NCBI GenBank assembly: GCA_002104945.1
Contig: MCFH01000127.1
Location: 1-33,249 of the forward strand
Origin: Piromyces finnis finn
Taxonomy: Eukaryota; Fungi; Neocallimastigomycota
DNA length: 33,249 nt
Direction: 5' to 3'
Positions 11,049-33,249 of the stretch are shown in pieces. A program made the position numbers and the translations under genes. A model generated the notes under the pieces. That model worked only from the letters and a program-made list of their open reading frames with translations, made no database searches and had not been told where the DNA came from. Every line of letters starts with the position of its first letter. The stretch's first letter is position 1.

Positions 11049-11107
11049 TTATATTGTAGATAATAATTATTAATAAATATATAGTAATAATTATTATATA
11101 ATATAAA

Positions 11108-11607
11108 TGTAAAAGATTTTATTATATATTAGTTAATAAGTTATTATTAAAAGTTAAATTAAGTTAGGTATTACCCCTCTATAAGAGTTGAGTTAATAAC
11201 TAAATAAAGTTTTATAAAAAATAATAAAAGAAAGAAAATAAATATTATACACTAAAATAAATATTAGTAAATAAATATTAATAGTAAATAATTTTTATTT
11301 AAATAATTTTTATAGTTATATCTTTTATTTATTAATTATAATTATTATACATTAATTATTATTATAGTTATTAATTTACTTTAATACTAACGCCAAAGTA
11401 TTTTAGCGTTTGTTTACATTGAACTATTTAACTATACTAGTTTATTTTCTTTACCGCTTGATTGGGTAAAGCTAATAAACTTCCTATTTAAATAATAAAC
11501 ATTAATATATGGTTATGCATAATTTTTAACCAATAAATGCTAACCAGAATATATGGTTTCAATTGAAATATTTGTGGGCAATTTTATGGCCACAAATATT
11601 TCTTATA
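11108..11607 (-). mobile_element. Solo LTR, family T (older copy T1), 13 nt upstream of tRNA-Val
   Basis: Homologous to 23896-24389; TSD ATAAA (11103-11107, 11608-11612); terminal CA mutated to TA. Confidence 0.93.
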
Positions 11608-11620
11608 ATAAACAGTCAAT

Positions 11621-11693
11621 ATCCAAATAGTGTAGTGGTTATCACGTTTCCTTTACACGGAAAAGGTCCCCGGTTCGAACCCGGGTTTGGGTA
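11621..11693 (+). tRNA. tRNA-Val-TAC: tRNA-Val(UAC)
   Basis: Full cloverleaf: acceptor ATCCAAA/TTTGGGT, anticodon stem TTTCC/GGAAA, loop TTTACAC, T-loop TTCGAAC. Confidence 0.97.
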
Positions 11694-11922
11694 ATGATAA
11701 ATATTATTTTAATGAAATATATTTTGATATGAATTTTAAAAATTGCATAAGGATAATATTTAAAGCTGACATACATCCCAAGCTGAATTTTTTTTTTTTT
11801 TCTTTATACTTTTATTTAATAATTTTAATTTAAAATATTTCTAAATTTATTTATTTATTTATATACTATTTAAATAAATAAGTATACTTATTAGAATTTA
11901 AATTTTATCATAACTACAACAA

Positions 11923-12047
11923 CAACTATTATTATTATGATTATGATTATTATTATTATTATTATGATTATTATTATTATTATTATTATTATGATTATGA
12001 TTATTATTATTATGATTATTATTATTATGATTATTATTATTATTATT
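11923..12047. repeat. (ATT/ATG)n microsatellite
   Basis: Interrupted trinucleotide array. Confidence 0.92.
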
Positions 12048-12790
12048 AATATATATTAATATATATAAAATATATAAAATTCTTGATAAATGTTTAAATA
12101 ATATTTTAATATTTTTTTTTCAATTAGTATAAATTGAATTTTGATTTTTAATGATTTTATATATAGATTATTAATATTTAATATTTCATAATTTATTACT
12201 AAACATAACAACTGGAATAATACTATAAAAATACTCTATATATTTTAAATTTTTCAAATATTTGCTTACAAATTAATAAATAATTATTATAATCTATAAA
12301 TTTTCACTAATTAAAAATTTTATATTTTATTTACATAATAGCTTTAGATTTGATTTTGATTAACTTTATGAACTTTTATTATCTTTATACTTATATCATC
12401 TTAATTGTATTTTATTATAAAAGCATAGCTAATATAATATATCTTTTTAATGATTACAAGATATGTTTCATAGCATATAATAAAGTTTTTAAAATGCTAA
12501 TTTTATTAAAGTTTGAATACATGTTTAAAACTTTTTTATTACCAAAAAGATTTGCTTGAAAATATTATATATTTAACATATAACTTTAAAAAGACTTTAT
12601 AAGATTGAATATTCTTAAAAATAATAAAAAAATATTTATTATTTGTAAATAATATAATGATACTTTTAAAAAATCCTTTTATTCTTTTAGTAGAATTAAT
12701 ATAATATAAATTTTTAGTATTTAATATTAGATTTTTAGTAATTACAAAAGTTATTTAAAGAAATATCTCAAATTTTAAATTTCATCTTAT

Positions 12791-13074
12791 AAAAATAAAA
12801 TAAAATAAAATAAAATAAAATAAAATAAAATAAAATAAAATAAAATAAAATAAAATAAAATAAAATAAAATAAAATAAAATAAAATAAAATAAAATAAAA
12901 TAAAATAAAATAAAATAAAATAAAATAAAATAAAATAAAATAAAATAAAATAAAATAAAATAAAATAAAATAAAATAAAATAAAATAAAATAAAATAAAA
13001 TAAAATAAAATAAAATAAAATAAAATAAAATAAAATAAAATAAAATAAAATAAAATAAAATAAAATAAAATAAA
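12791..13074. repeat. (TAAAA)n microsatellite, about 56 copies
   Basis: Pure pentamer array. Confidence 0.98.
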
Positions 13075-13667
13075 GTAATGTTTAATAAATTTATTTCATA
13101 CTAAGAAGTGAAAAATATTAAGCTTTCTGTTAACTATACTTATTTTGATTTTTTTTAAAAAAAAATAAGCATTAACTCATTTTTATTGATTGATTTATTA
13201 ATATATATAAAGTATTCAAATAAGAATATATAAATTTATTAAGAATAATATTTATTATAATAAACCAAGTATTTATAAAAGCTAATTGTAAAAATAAAAC
13301 TAAAAATGATCTAATAAATACATCACTATCTGGAAATAAAAATAGAAATAATTATTTTAAGTTTGCATAATATTAAAAAATAAAACAAGTTTTATATATT
13401 TATAGTTTTTTTTTTTTTTTTTTTTTATAATATACTAATATACTAACCACTTATTTTAGTAATTGATTTCCTTTTAAATTTAAATCATTTAAATCATATT
13501 CATTAATATTTATTAATAAAATATTTTATGTAAAATTTCACAAAAATATGTTTAAATTGCATAAGTTATAACATAATCAATCTTCTTGATTTTATATACT
13601 AAGTTAATATTATTTTTTTTTTTTTTTTCTCCACCTCCAAATAGTATTTCAAAATATTAAAAATATA

Positions 13668-13739
13668 TAGCAGCGGTATGTTTCGATCATACGACCTGTG
13701 GGTTATGAGCCCACCACGCTTCCACTGCGCTACGCTGCT
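13668..13739 (-). tRNA. tRNA-iMet-CAT: Initiator tRNA-Met(CAU)
   Basis: AGCAGCG/CGCTGCT acceptor with A1:U72, GGG/CCC in the anticodon stem, loop CTCATAA, eukaryotic initiator T-loop ATCGAAA; T-run downstream. Confidence 0.97.
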
Positions 13740-13751
13740 CTTAACTGCTTT

Positions 13752-14246
13752 TGTAAAAGGTTTTTTATATTATTAGTTAATAGGTTACTAATTAGTTAAT
13801 TAAGTTAGTTATTACCTCTCTATACGAGTTAATAACTAAATAAAGTTTTATAAAAAATAATAAAAGAAAGAAAATAAATATTATAACACTAAAATAAATA
13901 TAAACACTTATATAAATATTTTATGAAATAACTTTTACTTAAATAATTATATTTTAATTATATCTTTTATTTATTAATTATAATTATCTACATTAATTAT
14001 TATTATAGCTATTAATTTACTTTAATACTAACGCTAAAGTATTTAACGTTAGTTTTGACTATACTATTTAACTATATGAGTTTATTTTCTTTACCACTTG
14101 ATTGGGTAAAGCAAATAAACTTCCTATTTAATTAATAACCATTAATATATGGTTATGCATATATTTGGCCAATAAATGGTGACCAGAATATATGGTTTCA
14201 ATTGAAATATTTGTGGGCAAACTTATGGCCACAAATATTTCTTACA
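13752..14246 (-). mobile_element. Solo LTR, family T (copy T2), 12 nt upstream of tRNA-iMet
   Basis: TGTAAAAGG...TTCTTACA; perfect TSD GCTTT (13747-13751, 14247-14251). Confidence 0.96.
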
Positions 14247-14256
14247 GCTTTGTCAA

Positions 14257-15056
14257 TGTAAGAAATAATAATTATTTGATACATAATTAATATTTCTTAG
14301 TTAAAATCATTAATTATTAATCATTAATTAATGTTAATAATATTAGTTTATTTAAATAATTATTCTCATTTAAATTTATTTTAATTATTTATTTTCACTT
14401 AATTTTAATATCTTAAATTACATTTAGCCATTTAATTATACTATTCATTAATATTTTATTTAATATTTTTATTAATTATATTTATGCATTTAACTAATTA
14501 ATTTAATTAATTACTTTTATTTAACTTTATATTTTTATCAAATATATTTAATTATTTATTTAATTAATTACTTTAAAATAATTATTCATTGTTTAGGAAT
14601 CGATATTTTAAGGTTTTTTCCAATTTCTAAAATAATTGGTTTTACTTAAAATATACGATGATCAATATGTATAGAATGTTGATCGAACTTTGTTTAGGTT
14701 TTTCTTCTAATCTTTTCCTAAACAAAAAATTATTTTGTTAAGATTAGATAAAATTTTAATTTAAACTTTAAATTTATTAAATAATATAAATAAAGACTCT
14801 TGATTCCCTTCTAAGAAATCAAGAGTTATTATTATAAGAAACAAATTATAATAATAAAAGCGTTTTTAATTTTATTTTACTTAACTTAGTTATAATAAAA
14901 CATATTAACTTATTAAAGTGTAAAATTATTTCTACTCTTATAATAAACTCGAACCTAAAGATAAGTATTAATATTTATTTTCTTTTTATTCTCAATTTAT
15001 CAATAAATTGTAGTTAATAATTCTATTATATAATAATTTATAATGGAATTATTACA
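14257..15056. mobile_element. Solo LTR, family D (copy D2)
   Basis: TGTAAGAAATA...ATTACA; perfect TSD GTCAA (14252-14256, 15057-15061). Confidence 0.92.
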
Positions 15057-15110
15057 GTCAAAAGTTTATTATTGTAAAATATTGTATTAGTTAAATAATG
15101 TATTTAATCC

Positions 15111-15926
15111 TGTCAAGAATAGAAGACGATTAAAAAATAAATTAAATATTCAAATAAATAATTTAAAAATCAAAGTTATATTTCAAAAATTATAAAACAC
15201 TTTTAAAAATAATTAAAAGATCACTTTGAAAAAATTTAATATTGAAAAGGGTTAAGGATCACAAAAATTTAATTTTCAATAAATTAACCTTTGAGAAAAA
15301 AATGCATTATACGAAACTAGTGATAACTTCTGAATCTCGCGTCCTATTTTCATTTTCTAGAGACTTCAAATCAACTTTATTAGAAAGTACTAGTTGGGAT
15401 CTATATTCTCACAAATTTTCAGCTAATTTAGACCACTAGTTCTTGAGATATAGCTATTTAAAGATTTATGTAAAATTTAATTTATTGATAAGATAAAGTT
15501 TTTTGATGATAAAATAAAATTTTAAAATTAAATAATTTTTAACTAATAAATATTTGAGATAATAAAATTTTTTTTATAAACTAAGCCTCAAAATTAGAAA
15601 TAAATAAGTTAAATTTATGTTTGAAATATAATCAACCACAAAGCAAATAAATCAAAACTTTATTTTAAGTTTAGAAAATTCTTTATTAAATAAATTGAAT
15701 TTAAATAGTTTAATACAAATAATTTCTTTTAATAAATGTATAAATGTAAACAATGTAAAATTATAATATTAAAACATGTATATTAGAATTAATTCAATTT
15801 ATTTAAAAAAGTATAAATAAAGAAAATTTCTCAACTATTGAAACGATAGTTGGAAAATAGTAGTTGTTGATAATTAATTAATTAGTATTAATAATATTAG
15901 ATTATTAATAAAGTTATAATAAAACA
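15111..15926 (+). mobile_element. LTR-like element, family E (copy E1)
   Basis: Starts TGTCAAGAATAG; about 360 bp closely similar to 21327 onward; shared end AAGTTATAAT(AT)AAAACA. No TSD; right end tentative. Confidence 0.7.
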
Positions 15927-16086
15927 TTTTTTTTATTTTATTTAAAAAACCTGGTTACCTAGCGAAGGCTTTGGTCAAATAACCTTCGTGGTAAAGTAAT
16001 CAGCAGTTGTCATAAATTAGAGGAATAAAGTTATTTTATAAATAAAAAATTATTAAAAATTAAATTGGAAGTTTTTCTGTTGTTGT

Positions 16087-16106
16087 CTTGTTTGTTTTTT
16101 TGTTTT

Positions 16107-16146
<40 letters not shown>

Positions 16147-16244
16147 TTTTGTTTTGTTTTGTTTGTTTTGTTTTGTTTTGTTTTGTTTTGTTTGTTTTTT
16201 TTTTTGTTTTGTTTTGTTTTGTTTTGTTTTGTTTGTTTTGTTTT

Positions 16245-16283
<39 letters not shown>

Positions 16284-16451
16284 TTTTGTTTTGTTTTGTT
16301 TTGTTTTGTTTTGTTTGTTTTGTTTTGTTTTGTTTTGTTTTGTTTTGTTTTGTTTTTGTTTTGTTTTGTTTGTTTTGTTTTGTTTTGTTTTGTTTTGTTT
16401 TGTTTTGTTTTGTTTTGTTTTGTTTTGTTTTGTTTTGTTTTGTTTTGTTTT
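16087..16451. repeat. (TTTTG)n / poly-T microsatellite
   Basis: Low-complexity array; source of several spurious ORFs. Confidence 0.97.
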
Positions 16452-16564
16452 AAAAATAGAGTAGCACAGACCTAAATCCAATAATTTGATTTAAAGGTTA
16501 GATTTAAATTAAATATTTTACAATTATATTTTCTATAAGAGGAATAGATTTATATATTATTTTA

Positions 16565-17267
16565 CGCCATGAATAATAGTGGATTCATGATTATTTATTT
16601 AAATAATATAACGTTTTATTTGTTTAATTAATTAGGAATATTTTATTATAAAACAGTATTAAATAATATTTAAGAGATATTCTTATTTTATAATTATTAA
16701 AATTTTATATTTATTAATGCTTGAATTAATATCCCTTTGTCCATTTGATTATGAAGGAAATTAAAATTAAATTATAAAATAATCATTCCTTCTGCAAATG
16801 ACTTATAATATGATTTTAAAATTATTAAATATAACTCGAGTTTAATAGTCATATATAATTATATATAATTAATATATATTTAATTTATAGAATAGTTAAT
16901 TAATATAAACAATTAATCATGTATTAAATATTAAATGTATTCCTTTAATATTAAAGATAGTATAAATACTCAAGAAAATTCCTATCATTAGGAATTTCGA
17001 GAGTTCATTAATCTAAATATTTAACCTAATAATAATAATTAATAATAAATTTTTTTAAATAAAATTTTTCTTTAAATAAAATTTTTTCTTTAAATAAAAT
17101 TTTTATTAATAAATAAAGTTAATTAATAAATAAAGTTAATTAATAAATTAATAATAAATTAATATTTATTTAAAATTTTATTTATCCATTCATTTCATTT
17201 ATTTAATTAATTAACAATTTAGGGTAAAATAGTACGTTCCGACCCAACCGAAGTGAAAAACCTGTCA
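16565..17267. mobile_element. Solo LTR, family C (copy C2)
   Basis: CGCCATGAAT (TG decayed to CG)...CCTGTCA; TSD TTTTA (16560-16564, 17268-17272). Confidence 0.88.
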
Positions 17268-17565
17268 TTTTATGTCAAGATTATAAGGGAATTTGAATTT
17301 ATAATTAAATCTACTAGGTTAGGATAGGCTTAATTATATAGTAAAATAATAAATTTTAAAATAAAAGAATAATAAATATAGTTTTTAAAGAATTATTTTA
17401 TTTAATTTTTATTATATAACAATAAATGATAATTATCAATTTTAAAGTATTGAATTTACTATATAAAAATGTGTATTAATAATCTCATAAAGAACTTCTT
17501 AAAGTTGTTTTTTGTTCAATTTATTTATACATCATTTTTAATATAACCTTTGATATTAATAAAAT

Positions 17566-17930
<365 letters not shown>

Positions 17931-18585
17931 ATATAAATATTAATAAAATATAATATAATTTTCTTTAAATATCGATATTAATAAGTTGATAAGTTGTTAA
18001 AAATAATATTAATAATTATTTAAATAAATCTTATTTTACTAATTAGTTTGTTTAATATTAATTAATTGCTACACTATTTATCTCCGAATAATAAATAGTT
18101 TTACAATTAATATTTATATTAAATCAACTATTATTAGTAAAATATTATTAAATTAATATTTTAATTAATTTAATTAATAATTTCAAAATTATGAAATTTC
18201 ATGAAATGTCGAATTTCATGAATTGGGATTTTGACATTTAATATAAAAAAATACTACAATAATAAATAAATAGCAACGTCTCATACAAGCTAATATTATA
18301 AATAATGTTTTTATATTAAAATTTATAAAGAAATTAGTAATTATATAATGAATAAAACCATTTAGTTATATATAATAATAAATGTTTATTCGCTTTATTT
18401 CTCTTACTAATATAAAGTATCTTTACCTATTTTAAATTAATTATTCTTTATTATGAATTATTTATTATGCTATTTTACTTTAATAATAACACTAAAGTAT
18501 TAGCGTTTGTTCACATGTTTTCTTTTATAATATTATTAATATGCATTATTGATTAATATTAAATAATATTATATACTATATAAAT

Positions 18586-18802
18586 ATTAAATTAAATATT
18601 TTTTTAAATATAAAATTAAATATTTTTTTAAATATAAAATTAAATATTTTTTTAAATATAAAATTAAATATTTTTTAAATATAAAATTGAATATTTTTTA
18701 AATATAAAATTAAATATTTTTTAAATATAAAATTGAATATTTTTTAAATATAAAATTAAATATTTTTTAAATATAAAATTGAATATTGTTTTAATATAAA
18801 AT
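18586..18802. repeat. 23-24-bp minisatellite (TAAAATTAAATATTTTTT[T]AAATA), about 9 copies
   Basis: Tandem array. Confidence 0.92.
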
Positions 18803-19626
18803 AGTTATTAGCATTTTATAATATTGTATATAATATTAAATTTTTATAATAAATTATAAATTATATCACATGAAATATTATATGATATATATTTTGATAT
18901 ATGTTTCTTTTATGTTGTAGTAATTTAATGTATAGAGTTAGTATATATATGTTTTTTCTTAATCATTTATATATTTTTTATTTTTATTTTTTTTTAATTT
19001 ATTTTTACTCCTTGAATAGTAATATGCTCTTAAAATTAACATTTCTTTCCAGATATTGTCCTGTAAGTTCATCTTGTAGTTTAGCTGTATTCCAAGATAT
19101 TCCTCTTATAATAAAAGTCTGATAAAATAGGGTTCTAATCTATTTCTTCGTTAATTTCTAATCTTTATTTTATCCCTTATTTTATAGTTGTTTTTATTCA
19201 TCATACTTTGCTGAGCTAATCTTCTACTTTTCCAATAATTTATTGTCTTTAACGTTTTACTGGCAGCTTGTTTTACTCATTTTAAAAACATTTCCATTAA
19301 TAATCCTTCTACTGATCTTTCTTTTATTATTAATATTGAATTTCTTATATTGATGTCAATTGGAATATTATCTGATCTTCCATGCAATAGTTCAAAACTT
19401 GAATAACCAGTAGACACAGATTTACAAATTCGGATAGCCCATAATGCAATTGGTAGCAATACATCCCAGTTTTCATTATTATCAGTGAAATTTCTTAATT
19501 GCTTGCCAATTTTTCTGTTCCTATTTTCAATCAGTCCATTATATTCCGGATGGTATGTGCTAATAAAATGAATATATACGTCATATAGGTCTACAAATAT
19601 TTTTGTATATTCAGAAACAAATTGAA

Positions 19627-20246
19627 TGTAAAGATATCAAACGCCACAGATTGATATCTTTAATATAACTTAAGCCATAATCATTATTGTTTAAGTTACA
19701 CGAATTATATTACAGAAAAAGAAAATGAGACATAATTTATTTATTAATAATTAAAGTTTAAAACAAAATAAATTATTAATTTATTTTTAATGTTTAACAA
19801 ATAAATTAAAATTCTCAATTCAAACCCCTAGTTTTAGTATTGTTTTGTAATAGAAATAGATATATAGTATATAATTATTAAATGATTAATATATCAATAA
19901 TACATGGGCACATATTCAAATTGAATAGTACTTAATTTGAATTGCCAACTGTATTTTACTAAAAATAGTTATAGTTTAAATATTTATTAATAATTAAGAT
20001 TTTAGGTGTAGATTTTAAATAATAATATATAAGAAATAAATAATTATAATATAGCATAAATGTATTTAGGAAAAATATAAATAGAAGATATTTTTCATCA
20101 TTTTATCGATGTAATTGTTATTAATAAAATTTCTATTATAATAAAAGATATTTTTTAATAAAACAATTTTATTTCTTATTTTATTCATTTAGTGTTATTG
20201 TAATAGAATAGATATCCTAATCTATTCTTTTTGTGTTAGCATTACA
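19627..20246. mobile_element. Solo LTR, family B (copy B2)
   Basis: TGTAAAGATATC...ATTACA; flanks TTGAA/CTGTA match 3/5; removal restores the integrase D-V-Q-F frame. Confidence 0.9.
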
Positions 20247-20839
20247 CTGTACATCATTATCTGACATTATTAATTGTGGAATTTCATGCTTGCTGAACAC
20301 TTCAACTAAAAAATTGGTTACATCTTGAGAGGTAGTAGTTCTAACTGGTTTTTCTTCTACCCACTTTGTAAAATAATCTACGCGTATCATTATATATTTG
20401 TTTCCAAGTGTAGTTTCTTTTGATGGACCTATAATACCAAAACCAAGTCTAACAAAAGGAGCTTTGACAGGTGTTCTAAATTTTTCCGTTGGTTTTGGTA
20501 GTAGTTTCAATTTGTTTAATTGATAGATTTTGCATAAGGAGACATATTTTTTTACATCAATAATTAAACTTTTTCAATAATATTTATTCTTGTTCCTTTC
20601 ATATGTTTTTTGTACACCTTCGTGTTCTGTTCTATATTCCTTTGCAGTTATCTTGGTTTTTGTATAAGGATCGTCAATAATCTCTCAAAAATTATTATTA
20701 TCTTTGAAATATAGTTTATTGTCAATAATGGCAATTTTATAATTTAAAAATTTTTTCATAAAATTGGAAACAACTTTTTCGTTTTCCCCCTCGTTAAAAT
20801 TGGAACTATTGGTTTTATTAGAGATATCAATATTGTCAA

Positions 20840-21150
<311 letters not shown>

Positions 21151-21326
21151 CTATTATTGTATAAATAAATGGAACAAAGAGTAACTTTAAAAGGTTCTTT
21201 ATGAAAGGGTTCTAATAAATAATTTTTTTTCACACAGTAAAAATATAATAAAACAAATACATTAAATACTACAACTAAGAATTAATTTTGTATATAATTT
21301 TCTTATTATATTTACAATATATTAAT

Positions 21327-22479
21327 TGTCAAGAATAGAAAACGATTAATAAATAAATTGAAATATTCAAACAATAATCTAAAAATCATCTTTATATTTC
21401 AAAAATTATAAAATAATTAAAAGGACACTTTGGAGAAATTTAATATTGAAAAGGGTTAAGGATCACAAAAATTTAATCTTCAATACATTAATCCTTGAGT
21501 AAAAAATACATTATATAAAACTAATGGTAACTTCGGAATCTCGCGTCCTATTTCCATTTTTCTATAAACGTTAAACTAACTATGTTAGAAAGTACGAGTC
21601 AAGATCAATATCCTCATGAATTTCCAGTTATTTTAGATCACTAGTTCTAAAGATATGACTATTTAAAGACCTAATTAGTACCAATTAATATATATTGAAA
21701 TGATCAATATTAATTTATATAATTAAAATCATTATTCAAGTCATCCAACTTTCTATAAATAATTTAATTTAAAAATTCTCCATTATTATTAAATAAGGTT
21801 AGATAATAAGTATTCTTGATTACAAACCTAATCAATTATAAAAATTAATTAATAATTTCTCAAATAATTTTTGATTATTAACTTCAATCAAAACCAAACC
21901 AAAAAACCTTTTGATCAAAAATCATTAGTAATAATTATTAATTAATTAATCATGAGAATACATAATTAGCATCAGCAATTGTTACTCTCAATTTATGATA
22001 TTAAATATTTATAATTTAATATGTTTAAAATAATACTTTTTATTTAAAAGAAATCTAAAAGATTAATCTTAAGATCTATCATATGAATTCATATCAATAT
22101 CAACTATTAATATTTTAATTTAAAATTATTTTATTTTTATCTTTATTATTAATATCAATATTATATCAATGTAATTTTATTAATTGTAAGAAAAGTATTT
22201 AAACAAAAAATTGAAATCATTTTGAAATTTTTTGTAAGATTATTAATTATTAATTAGTATTTATTACAATATAACTTGATAAATATTATTTTAATTGACA
22301 AATGATTAATAAATAAATTTTATAAATAATTTATATCAAATAAAAGAGTTTATATTAATTATAAGAAACCATTTAATTTTAAATTAGTATTGATTAGATT
22401 CTTTAACCGTTTTAAAGAAATAGTTTAATAATAAACAAGTTTAATATTTTATTATTAAATTAAGTTATAATATAAAACA
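21327..22479 (+). mobile_element. LTR-like element, family E (copy E2)
   Basis: Starts TGTCAAGAATAG; ends ATATAAAACA followed by TTCTAACC. Middle diverges from E1. Confidence 0.65.
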
Positions 22480-22526
22480 TTCTAACCAAGTTGCGTACCA
22501 CCCCAAGCCCACTTCACATTAATTCA

Positions 22527-22750
22527 TGTTACGGATTTCACTTCAGTTAGGTCGGAATATACATATTTACCCTAAGTTTATTAATTTAATAAATAAATGA
22601 ATAAATAAATATTTTAAATAAATAACATTTTATTAATTAACTTTATTTATTAATAAATTTTTATTTAAAGAAAAATTTTTATTTATTAAATATTATTATA
22701 ATTAGAGTAAATATTTATATTCCGACCTAACTGAAGTGAAATCCGTAACA
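22527..22750. mobile_element. Fold-back fragment of family C LTR with perfect 35-bp inverted termini
   Basis: 22527-22561 is the exact reverse complement of 22716-22750; interior is the reverse complement of the C3 right end. Confidence 0.85.
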
Positions 22751-23186
22751 ATGAACTCTCCACTCTACTACAAGACTTTGGGACTTCAAACTACTAGTTA
22801 GATCTTAAGGTTTTGTGGACTTCAAGTTGCCTTGGAATGTACAAATACATTTATTAAAGAAATAAACGCCACCTACGCCACATATGTTAACATATATTTT
22901 GGAAAATTTTTTGAGAAATGAATTTGGTGGAATTTGAAATGGAATTATGAGATTTTTGAAATTTGAATGTTGGAGAAAGTTATTAATCTATCTTTGAATT
23001 AAGGACTACTAAAATAAGTAATACTATTCTATCCTCTACTAAATGTAGAACTCCACATCCACATTGTGGATATAATTTTAAATTATACAAATTAAACTTA
23101 ATGGTTGTCTCATGAAGATTTTATATATTTCATTATTAAATTAATTTATAAAAATTGCCTAGAATTCAATTTTTGTAGACGGGCAA

Positions 23187-23835
23187 TGTCATGAATATTA
23201 GTGGATTCATGATTATTTATTTAATTAGTGTTCTATTCGTTTAATTAATTAGAAATATTTTATTATAAAACATAATTAAATAATATTTTAAGAGATATTA
23301 ATTAATTATAATTGTTAAGATTTTATATTTATTAAAATTAAAATTTGAATTAATATCTCTTTATTCATTTGATTAAGAAGGAAATTAAAACTAAATTATA
23401 AAATAATCATTCCTTCTACAAATGATTGATAACATGACTTTTATAATTATTAAATTTAACACGAGTGAAAAGTCATATATAATTAATATATAATTAATTT
23501 ATAGAATAGTTAATTAATATAAATAATTAGTCATGTATTAAATTTAAAATGTATTCCTTAATATTAGAGATAGTATAAATACTCGAGAAAATTCCTATCA
23601 TTAGGGATTTCGAGAGTTCATTACATTTAATATTTACTCTAATTATAATAATATTTAATAAATAAAAATTTTTCTTTAAATAAAATTTTTTCTTTAAATA
23701 AAAATTTATTAATAAATAAAGTTAATTAATAAAATGTTATTTATTTAAAATATTTATTTATTCATTTATTTATTAAATTAATAAACTTAGGGTAAATATG
23801 TGTATTCCGACCTAACTGAAGTGAAATCGGTAACA
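23187..23835. mobile_element. LTR, family C (copy C3)
   Basis: TGTCATGAAT...CGGTAACA; homologous to C2; no TSD; preceded by purine-rich AGACGGGCAA (possible PPT). Confidence 0.85.
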
Positions 23836-23895
23836 ATACATTGTAGTTAAGAATTTGCATATATAATTAAAATTATATATTTAGATTACATATGA

Positions 23896-24389
23896 TGTAA
23901 AAGGTTTTTATATATGTTAGTTAATAAGTTAAATATAACAAGTTAATTAAGTTAGTTATTACCTCTCTATACGAGTTAATAACTAAATAAAGTTTTATAA
24001 AAAATAATAAAAGAACTAAAATAAATATTATAACACAAAAATAAATATAATACGATAAATATTAATATGAAATATTATTTACTTAAATAATTATTATAAT
24101 TATTATCTTTTATTTATTAGTTATAATTATATACATTAATTATTATTATAGCTATTAATTTACTTTAATACTAACGCTAAAGTATTTAACGTTAGTTTTG
24201 ACTATACTATTTAACTATATGAGTTTATTTTCTTTACCACTTGATTGGGTAAAGCAAATAGACTTCCTATTTAATTAATAACCATTAATATATGGTTATG
24301 CATATATTTGGCCAATAAATGGTGACCAGAATATATGGTTTCAATTGAAATATTTGTGGGCAAACTTATGGCCACAAATATTTCTTACA
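23896..24389 (-). repeat. 3' LTR of element T (494 bp)
   Basis: Differs from the 5' LTR by 2 transitions and 3 one-base homopolymer indels by my alignment. Confidence 0.97.
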
Positions 24390-24400
24390 ATGCCCCCCTG
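24390..24400 (-). promoter_or_regulatory. Polypurine tract
   Basis: Minus strand CAGGGGGGCAT immediately before TGTAAG of the 3' LTR. Confidence 0.8.
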
Positions 24401-24410
24401 AGGAGAAAAC

Positions 24411-27092
24411 CTAGGCAGGGTTTTGGACACTAACCATGAATTCCTGGTAGCATTTATCTTGAAATTCCTTGAGTAGCTTATCATAGTGGGAGTTCTTGTC
24501 AATGATATCAGCATCAACCCACTCTTGTCTAAAGTCACTAAAGGTAGCTAAGTATTGGTAGTTATCCTTCTTTCTTCTGGCATTCATGATTTTGATAATT
24601 TTCTGGTAGCCCACTGGTGCAGGTGTTAGTTCTTCAGGTTTGTTATGGTAGGGTTCAAGTTCACTGATATGAAACACTGGGTAGACATTGGGGAAAGGTG
24701 ACTTGCTGATATCCAACCGGTAGTTAAGCTTGGTTTCATCAATTCTAATAACCTTGAAGGGACCGTACTTTCTTGCTTGTAGCTTGTAGAAGGGAAGAGG
24801 GTTGTAATTTTCTGGTTTTCTTAACCACACCAAATCCAGGAGCCTAATTTTAGGGTAGTTAAGTTCTCTTCTATGGTCCAAGTGGTCTAAGAACCGTGTT
24901 CTTGATATGTCCAGCATGTGCTTTAAGTTACCTAAGTTGTGAGCGAAGCTATCTAATATAGGAGCTTCACCAAGTGAGTGGACAAGTTCTGAGTCTTGAG
25001 GGTTCATATGTACCTGGTAGTTATACAAGGCTAGGAATGGGGACTGCTTAGTAGAACTGTGTACTGCATTATTATAGCAGAACTCAGCTAAGTACAAGTA
25101 CTTCAACCATTCGTCGTCATCAAAGGTCTTCACAAAGCATCTAAGGTACATACTTACGTAGGAGTTATTGCGTTCTACCTGACCAACTGTTTCATGATGG
25201 CCAGTAGTAGCAAGGTTTACTTCTACGCCAAAGAACCCCATAATGTCCTTCCACAACTTACTAGTGAACTGGACACCACGATCCGTAGTAACCGATTTGG
25301 GACAACCATGTAACTTGAATACATGTTGTAAGTATGCTAAGGCTGTTTCTTTAGCAGTAGGCATACTCCTAAATCCCACTAAGTGTATCATTTTGGTTAA
25401 CTTATCGCTACAAACCATGATACAACCTCTTCTAGTGACTTCTGGGGGTTCTGAGGGACTACTACCTGGTTTTCTACGTTCCTTAATAGGTAGGTCCGTC
25501 AGGAAGTCGATTTCTACTTCTTGCCAAGGTAAGTCTGCAACTTTTACCCTAGCAGCGCTACCGTACGGCTTGTGTCTGTTGTCCTTTTGGGTACAACATA
25601 TGGTACAAGCTTTAATATATCCCGCAATGTCATCCTTCATTTTTGGCCAGTAGTAGTTTCTGGCTATCAGGTCATAAGTTTTATCTTTTCCCAAATGACC
25701 TGCTGTTTCACTATCGTGGTTAAGTTTTATGATTGTTTCCCTTAACACCTTTGGTACATATGTACGTTCTGGTGCATCCTTTCTAACAATCAACCCATTA
25801 ACCATCAACCACTTCTTTTTGATGAGCTTGTGGCCTCTTTTTGCGTCAAGACCATCTCTAATTTCCCTAGCAAGCTCATTCGTGTTGTAAGCTTGTTTCA
25901 GTTCTCCCACAAAGCTTACTTCTAACACCGCATAGCACTCTTCTTCCACGGGTGGAAATTCTTTTACCTGTTCAGGTCGAAGGAGGCTAGCTTTTTCCAT
26001 CTCCAGTTGTACCTGTTCTGGAGATACCATTCTTGATAGGATATCGGCTCTACCATTCATTTTTCCTGGCCGATATATTATTTCGAAGTTGTATGCAGCA
26101 AACAGCTCTTGCCATCTTGCCTGTCTTGCTGTCAACAACTGTGGTTTTGTGGCGAACAGGAGATTCCTATGGTCACTATATACTAGGACCTTATGTTTCG
26201 CACCCATTAACAGGTGTCGCCACTCGATGAAAGCATTCCTAATAGCCAACAACTCCTTTTCCGTAATGGAGTAGTTGATTTCTGCTTTCGTAAGTTTCTT
26301 GGAATAGTAATACACAGGGTGTAGTTCATTGTCATCGCCTAGTTGTGATAATACACCACCCACTGCGTAGTTACTAGCGTCGCACTCCACTATAAACTGA
26401 CGGTCATGGTCAGGATATGCTAATACTGGTGGAGACAACAGCATTTCTTTTAACTTCTCGAACGCCTGGATGCGTTCTTCATTCCACAGGAACTGTACCT
26501 TTTTGGACGTCATCGCATATAACGGCCTTGCTATCTTAGAGAAGTCCTTTATAAACTTCCTATAATAGTTGCAGAATCCGAGGAATGACTGTAGTTCTTT
26601 AATGTTGGTTGGTTGTGGCCAACTTGCTACAGCTTTTAACTTTTCTGGGTCGGTTTTAATACCATATTTTCCAACTACATGACCCAGGAATGCAAGTTCT
26701 TCCTTGTGGAACTCACACTTCGCTAACTTAGCTACTAGACGATTATCTATTAGCTTTTGTAGGACTCTTTTTACATGCCCTACATGCTCTTCAAGTGACT
26801 TGGAGTAGATGATGATATCATCCAAGTACACTTGACAGCAGTCGTTGATTTCTTCTGCCAGCACCGTATTAATGAACCCTTGGAACGTGGCAGGAGCATT
26901 AGTCAACCCAAATGGCATCACTAGATATTCATAATGCCCAAACTTGGTTGAGAATGCCGTCTTGTATTCGTCACCTTCACGAATACGCACGAGGTTGTAG
27001 GCAGACTTCAAATCCAACTTGGAGAAGATAGTCGCGCCTTTCATAGCCTCAAACACTTGACTGATGAGTGGTAAAGGGAAGGAGTTACGCAC
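24411..27092 (-). CDS. pol: Pol C-terminal part: RT, RNase H, integrase, GPF motif, chromodomain-like tail (uninterrupted 893 aa; true start upstream)
   Basis: SKLDLKSAYN, YLDD, CDAS/EKE/SDH/RAD RNase H residues, H-H-C-C, IDF/TDRG/QVE DDE triad, YGPFKV. Confidence 0.95.
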   Translation of the reverse strand: MRNSFPLPLISQVFEAMKGATIFSKLDLKSAYNLVRIREGDEYKTAFSTKFGHYEYLVMPFGLTNAPATFQGFINTVLAEEINDCCQVYLDDIIIYSKSLEEHVGHVKRVLQKLIDNRLVAKLAKCEFHKEELAFLGHVVGKYGIKTDPEKLKAVASWPQPTNIKELQSFLGFCNYYRKFIKDFSKIARPLYAMTSKKVQFLWNEERIQAFEKLKEMLLSPPVLAYPDHDRQFIVECDASNYAVGGVLSQLGDDNELHPVYYYSKKLTKAEINYSITEKELLAIRNAFIEWRHLLMGAKHKVLVYSDHRNLLFATKPQLLTARQARWQELFAAYNFEIIYRPGKMNGRADILSRMVSPEQVQLEMEKASLLRPEQVKEFPPVEEECYAVLEVSFVGELKQAYNTNELAREIRDGLDAKRGHKLIKKKWLMVNGLIVRKDAPERTYVPKVLRETIIKLNHDSETAGHLGKDKTYDLIARNYYWPKMKDDIAGYIKACTICCTQKDNRHKPYGSAARVKVADLPWQEVEIDFLTDLPIKERRKPGSSPSEPPEVTRRGCIMVCSDKLTKMIHLVGFRSMPTAKETALAYLQHVFKLHGCPKSVTTDRGVQFTSKLWKDIMGFFGVEVNLATTGHHETVGQVERNNSYVSMYLRCFVKTFDDDEWLKYLYLAEFCYNNAVHSSTKQSPFLALYNYQVHMNPQDSELVHSLGEAPILDSFAHNLGNLKHMLDISRTRFLDHLDHRRELNYPKIRLLDLVWLRKPENYNPLPFYKLQARKYGPFKVIRIDETKLNYRLDISKSPFPNVYPVFHISELEPYHNKPEELTPAPVGYQKIIKIMNARRKKDNYQYLATFSDFRQEWVDADIIDKNSHYDKLLKEFQDKCYQEFMVSVQNPA

Positions 27093-27094
27093 TG

Positions 27095-28197
27095 TTACCT
27101 TATTAAGACGCCTATAATCAGTACATATCGTCTTTCACCACTCTTTTTGGGCACGAATAACACAGGATAACCTGCAGGACTCTCTGATTTCCTGATGAAG
27201 CCCTTTGCCAGGTTTTCCTCAATATATTCCTTCAGTGCTTTTTCCTCTTCTGGATTGAAGGGATATATAGGCCCTTTATGAAGACTAGCATCCGGCTCCA
27301 GGTCGATCTTACAGTCGTAAGGACGGTGTTCTGGTAGCTGGTTAGCTATTTCTTCATTAAATGCTTCTTTGAAATTGTGGTAGTACTTCTCCACGATTTC
27401 TTCAGGTGTAGGTTGATTTTCGTTTAAGTTTTCTTCCTGTACCAACCCTACGTAAATGTGATTTTTCTCTAAGTTTGACTCTTGTACCAACCCTACTGAA
27501 ACACAAGTTTTCTCTAAGTTGGAACTCGATGCCAACCCTCCGGAACTTCCGTCCCTGGTTTCTTTTGTAGCCTTGTGGCTACCATTACACACGATTTCGG
27601 CTTCGATGTTTTCTGCGGTTACAGTTACCAGAGGCCTTCTTGCTTTTGCATTAGTAACTGTAGTTATGGGACTTAATTGAGTACAGTAGTAGATATCGCC
27701 GTCATTTACACCATAACTGTTGGTGTGTTCTTTATCCTTATCATTATCTACTACGAAGTACCTCACTTGTGCATCTTTATCATAACCTCTGTAGATAAAG
27801 TGCTCATCCATGAAGCCCAGTCCCACAATGATTATCTCCGGCATGTAGTCGGATAGGTGACAACTTGTGTTGAAGCAGTATGGCTTAGCTTTTGTTCGCC
27901 AGATGGAGTTAACCATAACTTCAACTGCAAGTCATCTGAGAACTGCTTTAACTCGATATCACCATTCACAGTTCTGAATATGGCTGGTTTGTCCACTACC
28001 TTTAACCCGAGCTTCTTTGCTAAATTTGGGTGAATGAGGTTTGTAGTGGAACCAGTATCATACAAGACTTCTACCCTTTTTATATCTCGAGGGTTGCTTC
28101 TTGCATTTATTTCAGCTACTAGTTGGTTCTGACTGTAGTAGCTGTTATTGACCGTCGTTTGACTTGCCATAGCCTTAGGTAATGGGTTATTTCCCAT
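27095..28197 (-). CDS. pol: Protease, spacer and RT N-terminus (frameshifted in this sequence)
   Basis: VLYDTGS active site, IIVGLGF, LPEHRPYDCKIDL, SPAGYPVLFVPKKSG. Confidence 0.88.
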
Positions 28198-29774
28198 ACT
28201 AGAAGGTCCTTGCTTTGGTTGGAAGCTAGAACTTCTTCTAAAGCTTGACTTATTTAAGGATTCACGACGTTCTTTGGCACCGTTATTGTTTTTTACGTAA
28301 GCCTGAGTGTTGGTCTGCTCAACTTTAGGCTTATTATTTGGCTTGTTGTTCTTCTGCTTTAACTCAGCCCATCTAGATGGTCTACATGGTCTGTGATATC
28401 CAACAAGGCCATAATAGTGGTCTGGCGGTCTCTTTTGTCGTACTTTTCTATGGTTTCATTACGGAAGACTGCTTGGTGGTCATCGCACTTTAGCAAGACT
28501 TCATTAATGTTTCCAGCGTACGTTCCGGTTCAGGGATATCATAGAACGCTTCCCTGACAGAAGGCCTGACCTGTTGTATTAACACCTGTCTCCTAACATT
28601 TTCAGGAAGCCCAAGTGTTTCCGTCAATTCATTGAACTCTTCCAAGTAGTCGTATGCTTTTCCCCACTCATGTGTGAGCTTAAGCAACTTTGACTTGCAG
28701 AGTTCATGGGGAGACTCTGGTGGAAACTTATCTTGAAGGTGGAGGAATAGTCTTTCAGCATCGGGATTCCTACGCTGCAACATCCTCTCTCTAAGTCTAT
28801 ACCATCTCAATACTTTCCCACCTAGATGATCTTCAATGAAGCTAACCTTTGCCTTTTCGTCGTTACCATAGTCATATGGGTAACGTTTGAAATGACGTAA
28901 GCACTTCTCTTGAAAACCCTCTAAGTCTATCCCATTATTATCAAACATAGGCACTTTTTCTTCATACCTATGTACTCGCCAATCGAACATCTTCACTCCC
29001 CATCCTCGGAATATTCCGTAGGGTTGGTGCTGCTACTAGTTCCAGCACCATGAGGATTACCCATACCACCGGTTTGATAGGATGTTCTTTCATGAGCTCT
29101 GGCTTCAGCTCTTCTGTTCATGGCTTCGACTTTAGCCTCGAACAATTTTTCTCTTTCTTCTAGAGCGTTTCGTTGCTCCTCAATTGGCCATCTCTTCTTC
29201 AAGCTCTTTTTTATAAGAGACAAAGGCACTAGATTGACGGTACAACGTTTCTTGGTTGTTTAGCACTTGCTGGTGGTCTTGTAACCTTTCCTCATGTTCT
29301 GCGGTAAAGGCATTTTCCACAGCATGCAGCTCTTCCAAGCTAACTTGGCTAGCTGGACTCATTTGCTTCCAACCTTTGATCCACTTCAACAAATTTTTGC
29401 TGAAGAGCATCGTTTATCTCGCTCTTGTAAACCTCAATACCCCGAAGTTGTTCTTCCATAGCACCCAGACGGTTTCCCATACTAGCAAACTGGCTAGATA
29501 TTTCCGAAACCCATCTATTAAGAAGAACTTCAATGTGTTGCATTGGGTTTACCTCACTATTATTAGTAAAAAAGAAAGAAGGATCAACAGGGGTGGGCAT
29601 AGAATCCCCCTGTTGAACCTGTAAATTCTGATTAGATTCGACCTCAGTGCTTTCGAGAAGCACCGGGGTTCGAACCCGTGACATTCCCTCTACACCATCC
29701 ATGCCATCCGCGCTCGCCGCGTCAGGACGGGTCCCGTCCTTACGAATGATGTTTTTGTGTCCAATTATGGACAC
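28198..29774 (-). CDS. gag: Gag (coiled-coil N-terminus plus capsid-like domain), broken by several apparent one-base frameshifts
   Basis: ATG at 29774; capsid-like KVPMFD...KVSFIEDHLGGKVLRWY and AYDYLEEFNEL; no canonical CCHC knuckle seen. Confidence 0.8.
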
Positions 29775-30092
29775 CCCGAGGGTTAGGCGACTTACCTGCG
29801 TTTTTCATTTCTAATTCGAAAATAAATTCTTTTAATAATTAAAGAATTTATTATATAAAATATGGTTATAATGATTTTAAAATTACAAATAATGAATTTT
29901 TATGCTAAACTATTAAAAAATAATTATTTTTAATAATAAATTTACTTCTTTTAAATATAATATTTGAATATTATATAAAATATTGTAAATAATTATTATT
30001 AAACAATAATTTAAATAAAATAAATATGTTTTTTAAGAATTTTTATAACACTAACCTAATTAAAACTAAGCTAACGTAAGAACTAACTATAA

Positions 30093-30103
30093 AGCGTTAG
30101 TAT
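30093..30103 (-). promoter_or_regulatory. Self-priming primer-binding site (11 nt, ATACTAACGCT)
   Basis: Directly after the 5' LTR; exact complement AGCGTTAGTAT lies in the LTR at 30383-30373 (minus strand); no TGG tRNA-type PBS. Confidence 0.85.
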
Positions 30104-30594
30104 TGTAAAAGGTTTTTATATATGTTAGTTAATAAGTTAAATATAACAAGTTAATTAAGTTAGTTATTACCTCTCTATACGAGTTAATACTAAATAAGTT
30201 TTATAAAAAATAATAAAAGAACTAAAATAAATATTATAACACAAAAATAAATATAATACAATAAATATTAATATGAATATTATTTACTTAAATAATTATT
30301 ATAATTATTATCTTTTATTTATTAGTTATAATTATATACATTAATTATTATTATAGCTATTAATTTACTTTAATACTAACGCTAAAGTATTTAACGTTAG
30401 TTTTGACTATACTATTTAACTATATGAGTTTATTTTCTTTACCACTTGATTGGGTAAAGCAAATAGACTTCCTATTTAATTAATAACCATTAATATATGG
30501 TTATGCATATATTTGGCCAATAAATGGTGACCAGAATATATGGTTTCAATTGAAATATTTGTGGGCAAACTTATGGCTACAAATATTTCTTACA
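30104..30594 (-). repeat. 5' LTR of element T (491 bp)
   Basis: Minus strand TGTAAGAAATA...CCTTTTACA. Confidence 0.97.
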
Positions 30595-30605
30595 TATGAA
30601 GATTA

Positions 30606-30667
30606 TCCGCATTGGTCCAGTACACGCTTTCACCGTGGCGGCCGGGGTTCGATTCCCCGATGCGGAA
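30606..30667 (+). tRNA. tRNA-Glu-TTC: tRNA-Glu(UUC) lacking about 10 nt of the D-arm (pseudogene or sequence error)
   Basis: TCCGCAT/ATGCGGA acceptor, CTTTCAC anticodon loop and CGGGG-TTCGATT-CCCCG T-arm intact; only 62 nt long. Confidence 0.85.
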
Positions 30668-30677
30668 ATCTTTAAAA

Positions 30678-30751
30678 GCTCGCGTAGCCTAATTGGATAG
30701 GGCGTCAGACTTCTAATCTGAAGATTGCGGGTTCGAGTCCCGCCGTGAGTG
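30678..30751 (+). tRNA. tRNA-Arg-TCT: tRNA-Arg(UCU)
   Basis: GCTCGCG/CGTGAGT acceptor, TCAGA-CTTCTAA-TCTGA anticodon arm, TTCGAGT T-loop; no intron. Confidence 0.97.
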
Positions 30752-32774: not shown

Positions 32775-32846
32775 TGGAGAGTGAGTGATTCGAACACCCA
32801 ACCTTCCGCTCTGGAGGCGGACGCGCTACCGTTGCGCCAACCCTCC
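32775..32846 (-). tRNA. tRNA-Trp-CCA: tRNA-Trp(CCA)
   Basis: GGAGGGT/ACTCTCC acceptor, TCCGC-CTCCAGA-GCGGA anticodon arm, TTCGAAT T-loop, TTTT terminator directly after. Confidence 0.97.
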
Positions 32847-33249
32847 CTTCATTGACTTCTATTAATTTTGTTATGGTATGATATTACCTTAATTCTATAA
32901 ATGAATATAGAAAGTGACAATCTGTATCTAAAATTTAATAAATAGAAATAAAAAAAAAATATAAATGATTTTTATACTTGTTCATTTGAAAATCTTTGTT
33001 AATTTAAATAATAAATTTATTTTATTTGTTCATTTGCAAGTCCTTGTTAGTTAAAAATATAAATTTATTTTATTTAATTATAAAGTTTTAATATTTAATA
33101 ACTCTTGTATTATTATATAATATATATATTATTATTTTCAATACATCTGTATGTGTATTATTATAATTACAAATATTATTTTATATAAATTATATATCTA
33201 ATTTTACTGGATTATTAGGAACCATTTAATAAATTTAATATAAATATAT

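Follow-up and report, generated by a model that had tools for sequence, protein, structure and literature searches.

A young Ty3/gypsy retrotransposon family found 11-13 nt upstream of tRNA genes in the anaerobic gut fungus Piromyces finnis

The genome of Piromyces finnis finn (Neocallimastigomycota) hosts a young, multi-copy LTR retrotransposon of the Ty3/gypsy group, which we call family T. Its copies recur 11-13 nt upstream of tRNA genes, and this pattern in the genomic copies makes it very probable that the integration machinery of T is directed to the region where RNA polymerase III (Pol III) genes start. The element is ~6.7 kb long, has 494-nt LTRs and makes 5-bp target duplications. We analysed a window of 33,249 nt (assembly GCA_002104945.1, contig MCFH01000127.1, positions 1-33,249, forward strand) of this 56-Mb genome, which is very AT-rich and rich in repeats. 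The window contains one T element of 6.7 kb (T3) and two solo LTRs (T1 and T2), each with its own duplication and each 11-13 nt from the 5′ end of a tRNA gene (Val, initiator Met and Glu). These insertions had been reported in a preliminary description of the window, and we re-found them at the same positions and with the same duplications. The features are as follows.

11103-11107 (left) and 11608-11612 (right): ATAAA duplication of T1
11108..11607, minus strand: T1, solo LTR of family T, the oldest copy, tail end towards tRNA-Val
11621..11693, plus strand: tRNA-Val(TAC), as placed by Rfam, 13 nt from the T1 end
13668..13739, minus strand: initiator tRNA-Met(CAT), 5′ end 12 nt from the T2 head
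13747-13751 and 14247-14251: GCTTT duplication of T2
13752..14246, minus strand: T2, solo LTR with the less frequent orientation, head towards the tRNA
23891-23895 and 30595-30599: TATGA duplication of T3
23896-30594, minus strand: T3, complete element
23896..24389, minus strand: T3 3′ LTR, 494 nt
24168-24178: the putative self-primer 11-mer as it occurs in the T3 3′ LTR
24393..24399, minus strand: polypurine tract with the minus-strand sequence AGGGGGG, separated from the downstream 3′ LTR by 3 nt (CAT)
24411..27092, minus strand: Pol ORF, 893 aa
24426..24602, minus strand: chromodomain-like end of the integrase, ORF residues ~831-889
24645..24836, minus strand: C-terminal SH3 domain of the integrase (Pfam SH3_Tf2-1)
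25197-25427 and 25581-25757, minus strand: integrase catalytic core and zinc domain, respectively, within the Pol ORF
26091-26486 and 26676-27053, minus strand: RNase H and RT, respectively, within the Pol ORF
27832..28197, minus strand: ORF piece with the aspartic protease (DTGS)
28490..29774, minus strand: Gag region in four ORF pieces, with breaks specific to this contig
30093..30103, minus strand: primer-binding position of 11 nt, immediately following the 5′ LTR; its complement lies at LTR 212-222
30104..30594, minus strand: T3 5′ LTR, 491 nt, adjoining tRNA-Glu
30373..30383, minus strand: putative self-primer within the 5′ LTR, where R would start
30606..30667, plus strand: tRNA-Glu(TTC) gene with 10 nt deleted from the D arm, at a gap of 11 nt to the T3 end
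30678..30751, plus strand: tRNA-Arg(TCT), second gene of the Glu-Arg tandem, 10 nt after Glu

The LTRs of family T are direct repeats with TGTAA...TTACA ends, and 5-bp duplications flank all three window copies. The two LTRs of T3 are 98.8% identical, while T2 and T1 are ~94% and ~88% identical to T3. T1 is therefore the oldest of the three, as had been proposed. Many copies in the genome have LTRs that are 99-100% identical and retain an open gag-side frame; where T3 has its gag pieces, other copies show a single open frame of at least 434 aa. Contigs from four sequencing runs, whose RNA nature is a guess, carry parts of T and differ by 1 nt at every frame break of the window copy. Since the long ORFs of T3 all lie on the minus strand, the LTR at 30104-30594 must be the 5′ LTR and that at 23896-24389 the 3′ LTR, which corrects the strand first given for this element. 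An older LTR ends at 23890, directly beside the T3 duplication; T2 likewise has an older neighbour, an LTR from a different family that begins at 14257.

The three tRNA targets differ in how easily they are recognized. ARAGORN starts tRNA-Val at 11620, making the T1 gap 12 nt as against 13 nt by Rfam. The initiator identity of the tRNA-Met was read from its sequence (A1:U72, A54 and an anticodon stem with three G:C pairs). For the Glu target the reported gap of 11 nt stands, but the gene is not an ordinary one: 10 nt of its D arm are missing by comparison with an undamaged Glu-Arg tandem at another genomic locus, and it is itself part of such a tandem. Neither ARAGORN nor Rfam called a tRNA gene at 30606.

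The domains confirm the assignment to Ty3/gypsy. Pfam matches on the minus strand run in the order PR-RT-RNase H-IN-SH3, with a weak Retrotrans_gag match in the Gag region (E 0.078). The best relative among solved structures is Ty3 Gag-Pol (E 1e-100 over 813 residues). The nearest named proteins, among the best 120 homologues, are from Orpinomyces, another anaerobic gut fungus, which agrees with the host first suggested from the sequence. Two metagenomic relatives have a Pol 64-65% identical to that of T; we found no tRNA on their contigs. The end of the T integrase has no match to Pfam Chromo at E<=10. Its AF2 model consists of three strands and a helix, with Ty3 integrase (7q5b) as the top structural match, followed by the chromodomains of Rhino, CBX and MPP8 at a TM of ~0.8. 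The same segment aligns with canonical, Pfam-positive chromodomains of more distant homologues. At the level of the predicted fold, T thus appears to carry a chromodomain at its integrase C terminus. On the host side, a TBP core (P0239, residues 20-205) is 90% identical to a TBP exon in this genome, and the Brf1 gene is split by introns.

We then turn from the window to the genome. A genome-wide search for T-LTR tails returned 228, against none for a reversed-pattern control, and 130 of these at least 228 LTR copies were looked at; the tRNAs in most flanks were called by ARAGORN alone. The 93 external tail-side flanks reduce to 60 after duplicates are merged. Canonical tRNAs occur in 15 of the 60, every one at 11-13 nt (11 nt six times, 12 nt seven times and 13 nt twice), and comprise Arg, Gly, iMet, eMet, Trp, Cys, two Ser species and Glu. 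Another 10 flanks carry tRNA-like sequences with an A box and a B box in the same geometry, 27 have the terminus of another LTR within 10 nt and 8 belong to no class. Head-side flanks add three tRNAs at 11-12 nt, so the orientation bias is ~5:1 with the tail towards the tRNA. Had Pol III targeting been mistaken, the preliminary description argued, most T copies should lie far from tRNA or other Pol III genes, or show no peak at 10-15 nt; in our sample all 18 non-redundant tRNA-adjacent cases, covering ten tRNA species, fall at 11-13 nt. By our own arithmetic, the chance that three of six outer LTR ends hit a 3-nt upstream window, given 5 tRNA genes per 33 kb, is ~1e-9. Every solo LTR adjoining a tRNA or a tRNA-like sequence has kept a perfect 5-bp duplication. 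Copy L096 retains its duplication intact, yet we could see no Pol III-like gene nearby; the flanks scanned showed neither a 5S nor a U6 gene.

Measured from the T LTR end, the A box lies within +19 to +21 in tRNA targets and within +18 to +22 in the tRNA-like sequences; for the B box the two ranges are +62 to +65 and +62 to +66, respectively. Rfam at E<=5 found no tRNA match in the tRNA-like sequences, only chance hairpin matches at the LTR end, and for this reason we name them mimics rather than tRNAs. Their geometry suggests that they may be used by Pol III factors.

In these targets the T LTR end lies 11-13 nt upstream of the tRNA's mature 5′ end; from there the A box follows after ~20 nt and the B box after ~64 nt, and sequences that are no tRNAs but have both boxes so spaced are hit at an equal distance. 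Because the T 5′ LTR usually faces the tRNA, element and tRNA would be transcribed divergently. What would place the element so precisely? By analogy with the solved Ty3 complex, we lean somewhat towards TFIIIB, bound at the promoter, as the factor that positions the integrase through its C-terminal tandem of SH3 and chromodomain-like domains. A different tether, such as a Pol III subunit, TFIIIC or the shape of the start-site DNA, seems improbable. The integrase of Ty1, for instance, is tethered to AC40, a Pol III subunit. Geometry alone is silent on which factor is read, and the orientation bias points to a cue that is asymmetric, of the kind that TFIIIC provides for Ty3 (PMC5911963). Against this, T keeps to a 3-nt window at the predicted start site, like Ty3 and Tj1 and unlike Ty1, with its ~1-kb nucleosome-phased spread at Pol III genes (PMC5911963), and the modelled end of the T integrase folds like that of Ty3.

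Explanations without targeting fare worse. Integration could be random or loosely biased, with copies surviving solely at harmless sites in front of tRNAs. Such regions do tolerate insertions and old copies gather there, but selection is unable to yield a 3-nt window with intact duplications, and the same spacing is seen in copies with identical LTRs and open frames, which are too young for sieving. We regard this reading as very unlikely. Just as unlikely is a history in which a few ancestral LTR-tRNA units were copied, by segmental duplication or redundant assembly, in place of repeated integration. The window loci do recur with identical flanks on contigs C62, C15, C4 and C140, and redundancy explains the shrinkage of the tail-side flanks noted above. 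However, the 18 tRNA-adjacent cases survive this merging with differing duplications and leaders, and even two Glu-Arg paralogues carry different T duplications, TATGA and GATAA. Because the duplications differ and ten tRNA species were struck, we take the insertions to be independent events, in agreement with the separate integrations first proposed from the window.

The flanks that hold other LTRs call for a further explanation. In nearly all cases 5-10 nt separate the T head from another LTR's end, and together with the 27 adjoining tails this might suggest that T homes to older LTR termini with the tRNA as a bystander. We dismiss that idea, since the spacing to the tRNA stays at 11-13 nt, that to the older LTR ranges between 0 and 10 nt, and the one case traced (of the 27, over 10 kb) is explained if each element is measured from the tRNA. 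In that stack, on contig C181, removal of two later elements by their own duplications leaves a T end, 13 nt and a tRNA-Gly. Pol III targeting would account for such stacks, with later insertions of T and other LTR families at one spot displacing older copies outward from the tRNA. The impression that T is special in this respect has to be revised, as insertions of several other LTR families also accumulate at these tRNA sites. LTRs that share just the final 54 nt with T are doubtful as variants of the family; they look like T LTRs split at one fixed nucleotide by other families.

One other LTR family, with 235 copies and same-strand pairs 5.7 or 6.1 kb apart, apparently has a tRNA-gene mimic at its LTR edge. 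It is a tentative idea, which we would not yet favour, that the T integrase reads any promoter with an A box and a B box, including the mimic at this LTR edge. If true, the retrotransposons of this genome create landing pads for one another, and tRNA-anchored stacks could seed and spread without a real tRNA gene, a self-made safe haven. Pol III start-site targeting is usually explained as a means of survival in compact genomes; that reason is inapplicable here because the genome is large and gene-poor.

The priming of T also has parallels among known elements. Its 11-nt primer site begins at the first base after the LTR and is an exact complement of its own LTR. A self-complement of this length arose twice in 20000 shuffles, and the one in T is preserved in all 32 junctions that were retrieved. 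Reverse transcription of T is therefore likely to be self-primed as in Tf1 and Tj1, with a putative RNA start at LTR 212. Ty3 uses a tRNA primer, whereas T looks self-primed; moreover, Ty3 copies are few and T LTRs number in the hundreds, and TFIIIB binding by T is putative. In Saccharomyces cerevisiae, Ty3 otherwise resembles T in lying a few nt from the Pol III start, in its 5-bp duplication and in its use of both orientations (PMC8632968, PMC5911963). Ty3 is also the best match of T in sequence and fold among solved structures, and in its integrase an SH3 precedes a vestigial chromodomain; it is this pair of domains that touches TBP and Brf1 (PMC8632968).

In Tj1 of Schizosaccharomyces japonicus, self-priming occurs together with insertions that lie upstream of tRNAs by 5-11 bp (PMC4600332). 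Like T it is a Ty3/gypsy element with an integrase chromodomain and copies clustered at tRNA gene clusters; its primer site is complementary to its own RNA, as that of T putatively is, and it has a stop codon after Gag (PMC4600332). Tj1 differs in that its host is an ascomycete, its preferred orientation is opposite and its targeting is known from new integration events, whereas T is known here from genomic copies. Tf1 and Tf2 of S. pombe (the Tf1/sushi group) share with T an 11-nt complementarity, putatively self-priming in T, and a non-canonical chromodomain, and Pfam assigns the T SH3 to the Tf2-1 SH3 family; Tf1, however, targets Pol II promoters rather than tRNA genes. Fixed short tRNA distances are also reported for Ty3/gypsy elements of Dictyostelium (DGLT-A, Skipper-2), Yarrowia (Ylt1/Tyl3/Tyl6) and Candida (beta/Tca8) (PMC5911963, Table 1). 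Compared by description, these elements differ from T in host and in distance window, with DGLT-A 13-33 bp upstream and Skipper-2 downstream of the tRNA (PMC5911963).

The tRNA-targeting LTR elements tabulated in a 2018 review come from ascomycete yeasts and Dictyostelium only (PMC5911963), and the literature searched contained no description of such targeting in anaerobic fungi. Family T joins a known behaviour, that of Ty3 and Tj1, in a host group that is new within this literature. Precise Pol III targeting now appears in an early-diverging fungal lineage with a large, AT-rich and repeat-rich genome, in an element that combines putative Tj1-like self-priming with a chromodomain at an integrase end of Ty3-like fold. 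Is this targeting an old trait of fungal chromovirus-like elements, or has it arisen several times? Is the tandem of SH3 and chromodomain a general reader of TFIIIB? The family touches on both questions. The stacks are a dated record of insertions, and they account for the breakage of the assembly at tRNA regions into redundant small contigs. Finally, T indicates a predictable insertion site for fungi that have so far been without genetic tools.

The window, one entire 33-kb contig of a 56.5-Mb assembly in 232 contigs, has a non-coding GC content of about 17%, and its nearest named proteins are Orpinomyces proteins, which makes an anaerobic gut fungus its likely origin. Four tRNAs are called in it by ARAGORN and Rfam. 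The 494-nt LTR (TGTAA...TTACA) of the Ty3/gypsy retrotransposon family T occurs in four copies, two as solo LTRs (T1 and T2) and two in a full element (T3).

Called tRNAs and T insertions in the window
11108-11607, T1, solo LTR; duplication ATAAA; 13 (or 12) nt to the tRNA-Val 5′ end
11621-11693, + strand, tRNA-Val
13668-13739, - strand, initiator tRNA-Met
13752-14246, T2, solo LTR; duplication GCTTT; 12 nt to the initiator tRNA-Met 5′ end
23896-24389 and 30104-30594, T3 LTRs, bounding one 6699-nt element; duplication TATGA; 11 nt to the Glu 5′ end
30678-30751, + strand, tRNA-Arg(TCT)
32775-32846, - strand, tRNA-Trp

The preliminary description had reported three T insertions 11-13 nt from tRNA 5′ ends, and these hold up, each with its own 5-bp duplication (ATAAA, GCTTT and TATGA). 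Both orientations are indeed present, with T1 placed relative to Val as T3 is to Glu, and T2 reversed relative to initiator Met. The view of T1 as the oldest of separate events also agrees with the LTR identities (98.8% within T3, about 94% for T2 and about 88% for T1), which fit three events spread over time. The third target needs a correction: a Glu(TTC) gene does lie at 11 nt, but, set against the intact Glu-Arg tandem of another contig, it is missing 10 nt of its D arm and with them part of the A box, and neither ARAGORN nor Rfam calls it. The intact tandem has a T insertion of its own, also at a gap of 11 nt, with the duplication GATAA; since this differs from TATGA, the hits on the two Glu-Arg paralogues were independent events. 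The long ORFs of T3 are all on the minus strand, therefore the LTR adjoining Glu is the 5′ LTR and T3 and the tRNA are transcribed divergently. Tight same-strand tRNA pairs are seen in Glu-Arg (10-nt spacer, window 30606-30751) and Gly-Thr (6-nt spacer, positions 37-187 of the fetched locus L139).

Across the genome, the last 23 nt of the T LTR occur 228 times with at most two mismatches, and the reversed control pattern 0 times. We sampled the first 100 places by contig order, a choice blind to the hypothesis, together with the 30 best LTR matches, which covers about half of the T LTR copies. Duplicate loci were collapsed before flanks were counted, since identical loci turn up on many of the small contigs. 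On the tail side, the LTR end that faces tRNA-Val in T1, 60 unique outer flanks remained. Canonical tRNAs are found in 15 of the 60, with a gap of 11-13 nt to the LTR end in every case (11 nt in six, 12 nt in seven and 13 nt in two); they are Arg(TCT), Gly(TCC), initiator Met, elongator Met, Ser(GCT) and Ser(TGA), with Trp and Cys at three loci each and Glu at two. A tRNA-like sequence that includes a B box is present in ten flanks, another LTR's terminus lies within 10 nt in 27, and eight are unclassified; among these eight, L096 has kept its duplication intact and shows no target. Of the 48 unique head-side flanks, three adjoin tRNA 5′ ends, at 11-12 nt, so the orientation of T is biased 15 to 3. 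A perfect 5-bp duplication is kept by all solo LTRs adjoining a tRNA or a tRNA-like sequence. Searching with the T LTR and measuring its distance to tRNAs thus extends the spacing beyond the window: every canonical tRNA in the sampled flanks, 15 tail-side and 3 head-side, lies at 11-13 nt.

Measured from the T end, the A box of true tRNAs lies at +19 to +21 and the B box at +62 to +65, or at +73 to +74 in Ser tRNAs, whose variable arm is long. In the non-tRNA targets the corresponding positions are +18 to +22 for an A-box-like motif and +62 to +66 for a B box. Judged by this A-box/B-box geometry, the promoter is the reference point for T insertion. The tRNA-like sequences receive no tRNA call from ARAGORN or Rfam, even at E≤5. 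The commonest begins TGTCTTAGTGG, with a AGTTCGAGACC B box about 44 nt further on. At least eight independent T insertions, with differing duplications, lie in front of this motif, at the distance seen for tRNAs; examples are the flanks that begin at the T LTR end at L009, L036, L043, L053, L079, L111 and L113. It occurs at 235 places in the genome, typically as same-strand pairs 5.7 or 6.1 kb apart, a pattern that is the signature of another element family's two LTRs. A GC-rich stretch of about 120 nt with a GGTTCGAACC box lies between two T LTRs at L019 (contig C198); it is named by no tool and may be another Pol III gene.

The 27 LTR-next-to-LTR cases are of the kind expected from repeated hits at one spot, and one was traced, on contig C181. 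From the left it holds a T solo LTR (left duplication AAATT), one base, a 3.3-kb stretch with an element of a TGAT...TATCA family whose 3′ LTR hosts a nested solo LTR from a different family, a 6.7-kb element (AAAAT on either side, its two LTRs identical), 14 nt, and tRNA-Gly(TCC). The 3.3-kb stretch is flanked by ACAA, that is, the last three bases of T and the one base after it. Without the two later elements, the T end is followed by AAATT, 8 nt and tRNA-Gly(TCC), a gap of 13 nt. Other LTR families insert a few bases further out than T, at 15-17 nt, which explains why they frequently start 1-2 nt past the T end. In the window, T2 sits between initiator Met and an older LTR starting at 14257, T3 between Glu and an older LTR ending at 23890, and the tRNA-Trp 5′ end has a further LTR terminus no more than about 35 nt away (32847-32900). 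Other-family termini lay 17 nt from initiator Met before T2 and 11 nt from Glu before T3, and all tRNA loci in the window have been hit by LTR elements. Position 440/442 of the T LTR, 53-54 nt in from its tail end (about 24335 in the window; L047, L079, L102, L109, L120 and others), is a shared nucleotide at which at least five LTR families terminate, in …GACA or …CACA. A second fixed site of insertion could lie here, about 65 nt upstream of the tRNA. At L084 and L101 the same junction lies on an LTR that T internal sequence follows.

The window copy of T has a gag-pol frame broken at several points. A gag-side open frame of at least 434 aa is found on two other contigs that carry this locus and in most other T copies, and short-read contigs show single-base differences at each break, so the breaks belong to this contig and are probably assembly errors. 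Window loci recur with identical flanks on the small contigs C62, C15, C4 and C140, where the frame breaks are absent; this suggests that contigs around the stacks are redundant and poorly polished. Many T copies have LTR pairs that are 99-100% identical, so T was probably active recently.

T carries, in gypsy order, Pfam protease, RT, RNase H, integrase zinc and core, and Tf2-1-type SH3 domains, and Ty3 Gag-Pol is its best solved relative (E 1e-100). A Pfam search gives no Chromo match for the last ~60 residues of the integrase; these do align with the chromodomains that Pfam recognises in more distant homologues. An AlphaFold model of the integrase end (mean pLDDT 79.5) places three strands and a helix after the SH3. 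Its first Foldseek match is the Ty3 integrase of the TFIIIB-bound intasome (7q5b), followed by the Rhino, CBX, MPP8 and HP1 chromodomains (TM about 0.8). In Ty3, the SH3 contacts TBP and a vestigial chromodomain contacts Brf1, thereby fixing the insertion site (PMC8632968). By analogy, we infer that the SH3 and chromodomain-like end of T would work on TBP/Brf1 as those of Ty3 do. The T coding region (window 24400-30100) has about 42% GC versus about 17% in the DNA around it. An inverted repeat of 13 bp around a 12-nt loop is present in every T LTR, set back 5 nt from the end that faces the tRNA (window 24347-24384), and gives chance mir-15-like Rfam matches.

T is probably self-primed. LTR positions 212-222 (30383-30373) are exactly complementary to the 11 nt straight after the 5′ LTR (30103-30093, minus strand). 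Shuffling produced such a match 2 times in 20000, and it is retained by 32 of 32 fetched copies. An A/T-rich, TATA-like stretch is present 30-50 nt upstream of LTR position 212, and a G-rich polypurine tract 3 nt upstream of the 3′ LTR. Reverse transcription of Tf1 and Tj1 is primed by the same self-complement route (PMC4600332).

A literature search on anaerobic fungi, retrotransposons and tRNA, with subscription journals outside its coverage, found nothing relevant, and the table of a 2018 review lists tRNA-targeting LTR elements from Saccharomyces, Schizosaccharomyces, Candida, Yarrowia and Dictyostelium only (PMC5911963). In structure T is closest to Ty3, and in behaviour and priming it is closest to Tj1. 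The orientation that T prefers is the reverse of the one preferred by Tj1. The targeting by T is an already-known kind of behaviour, to which T is an added member.
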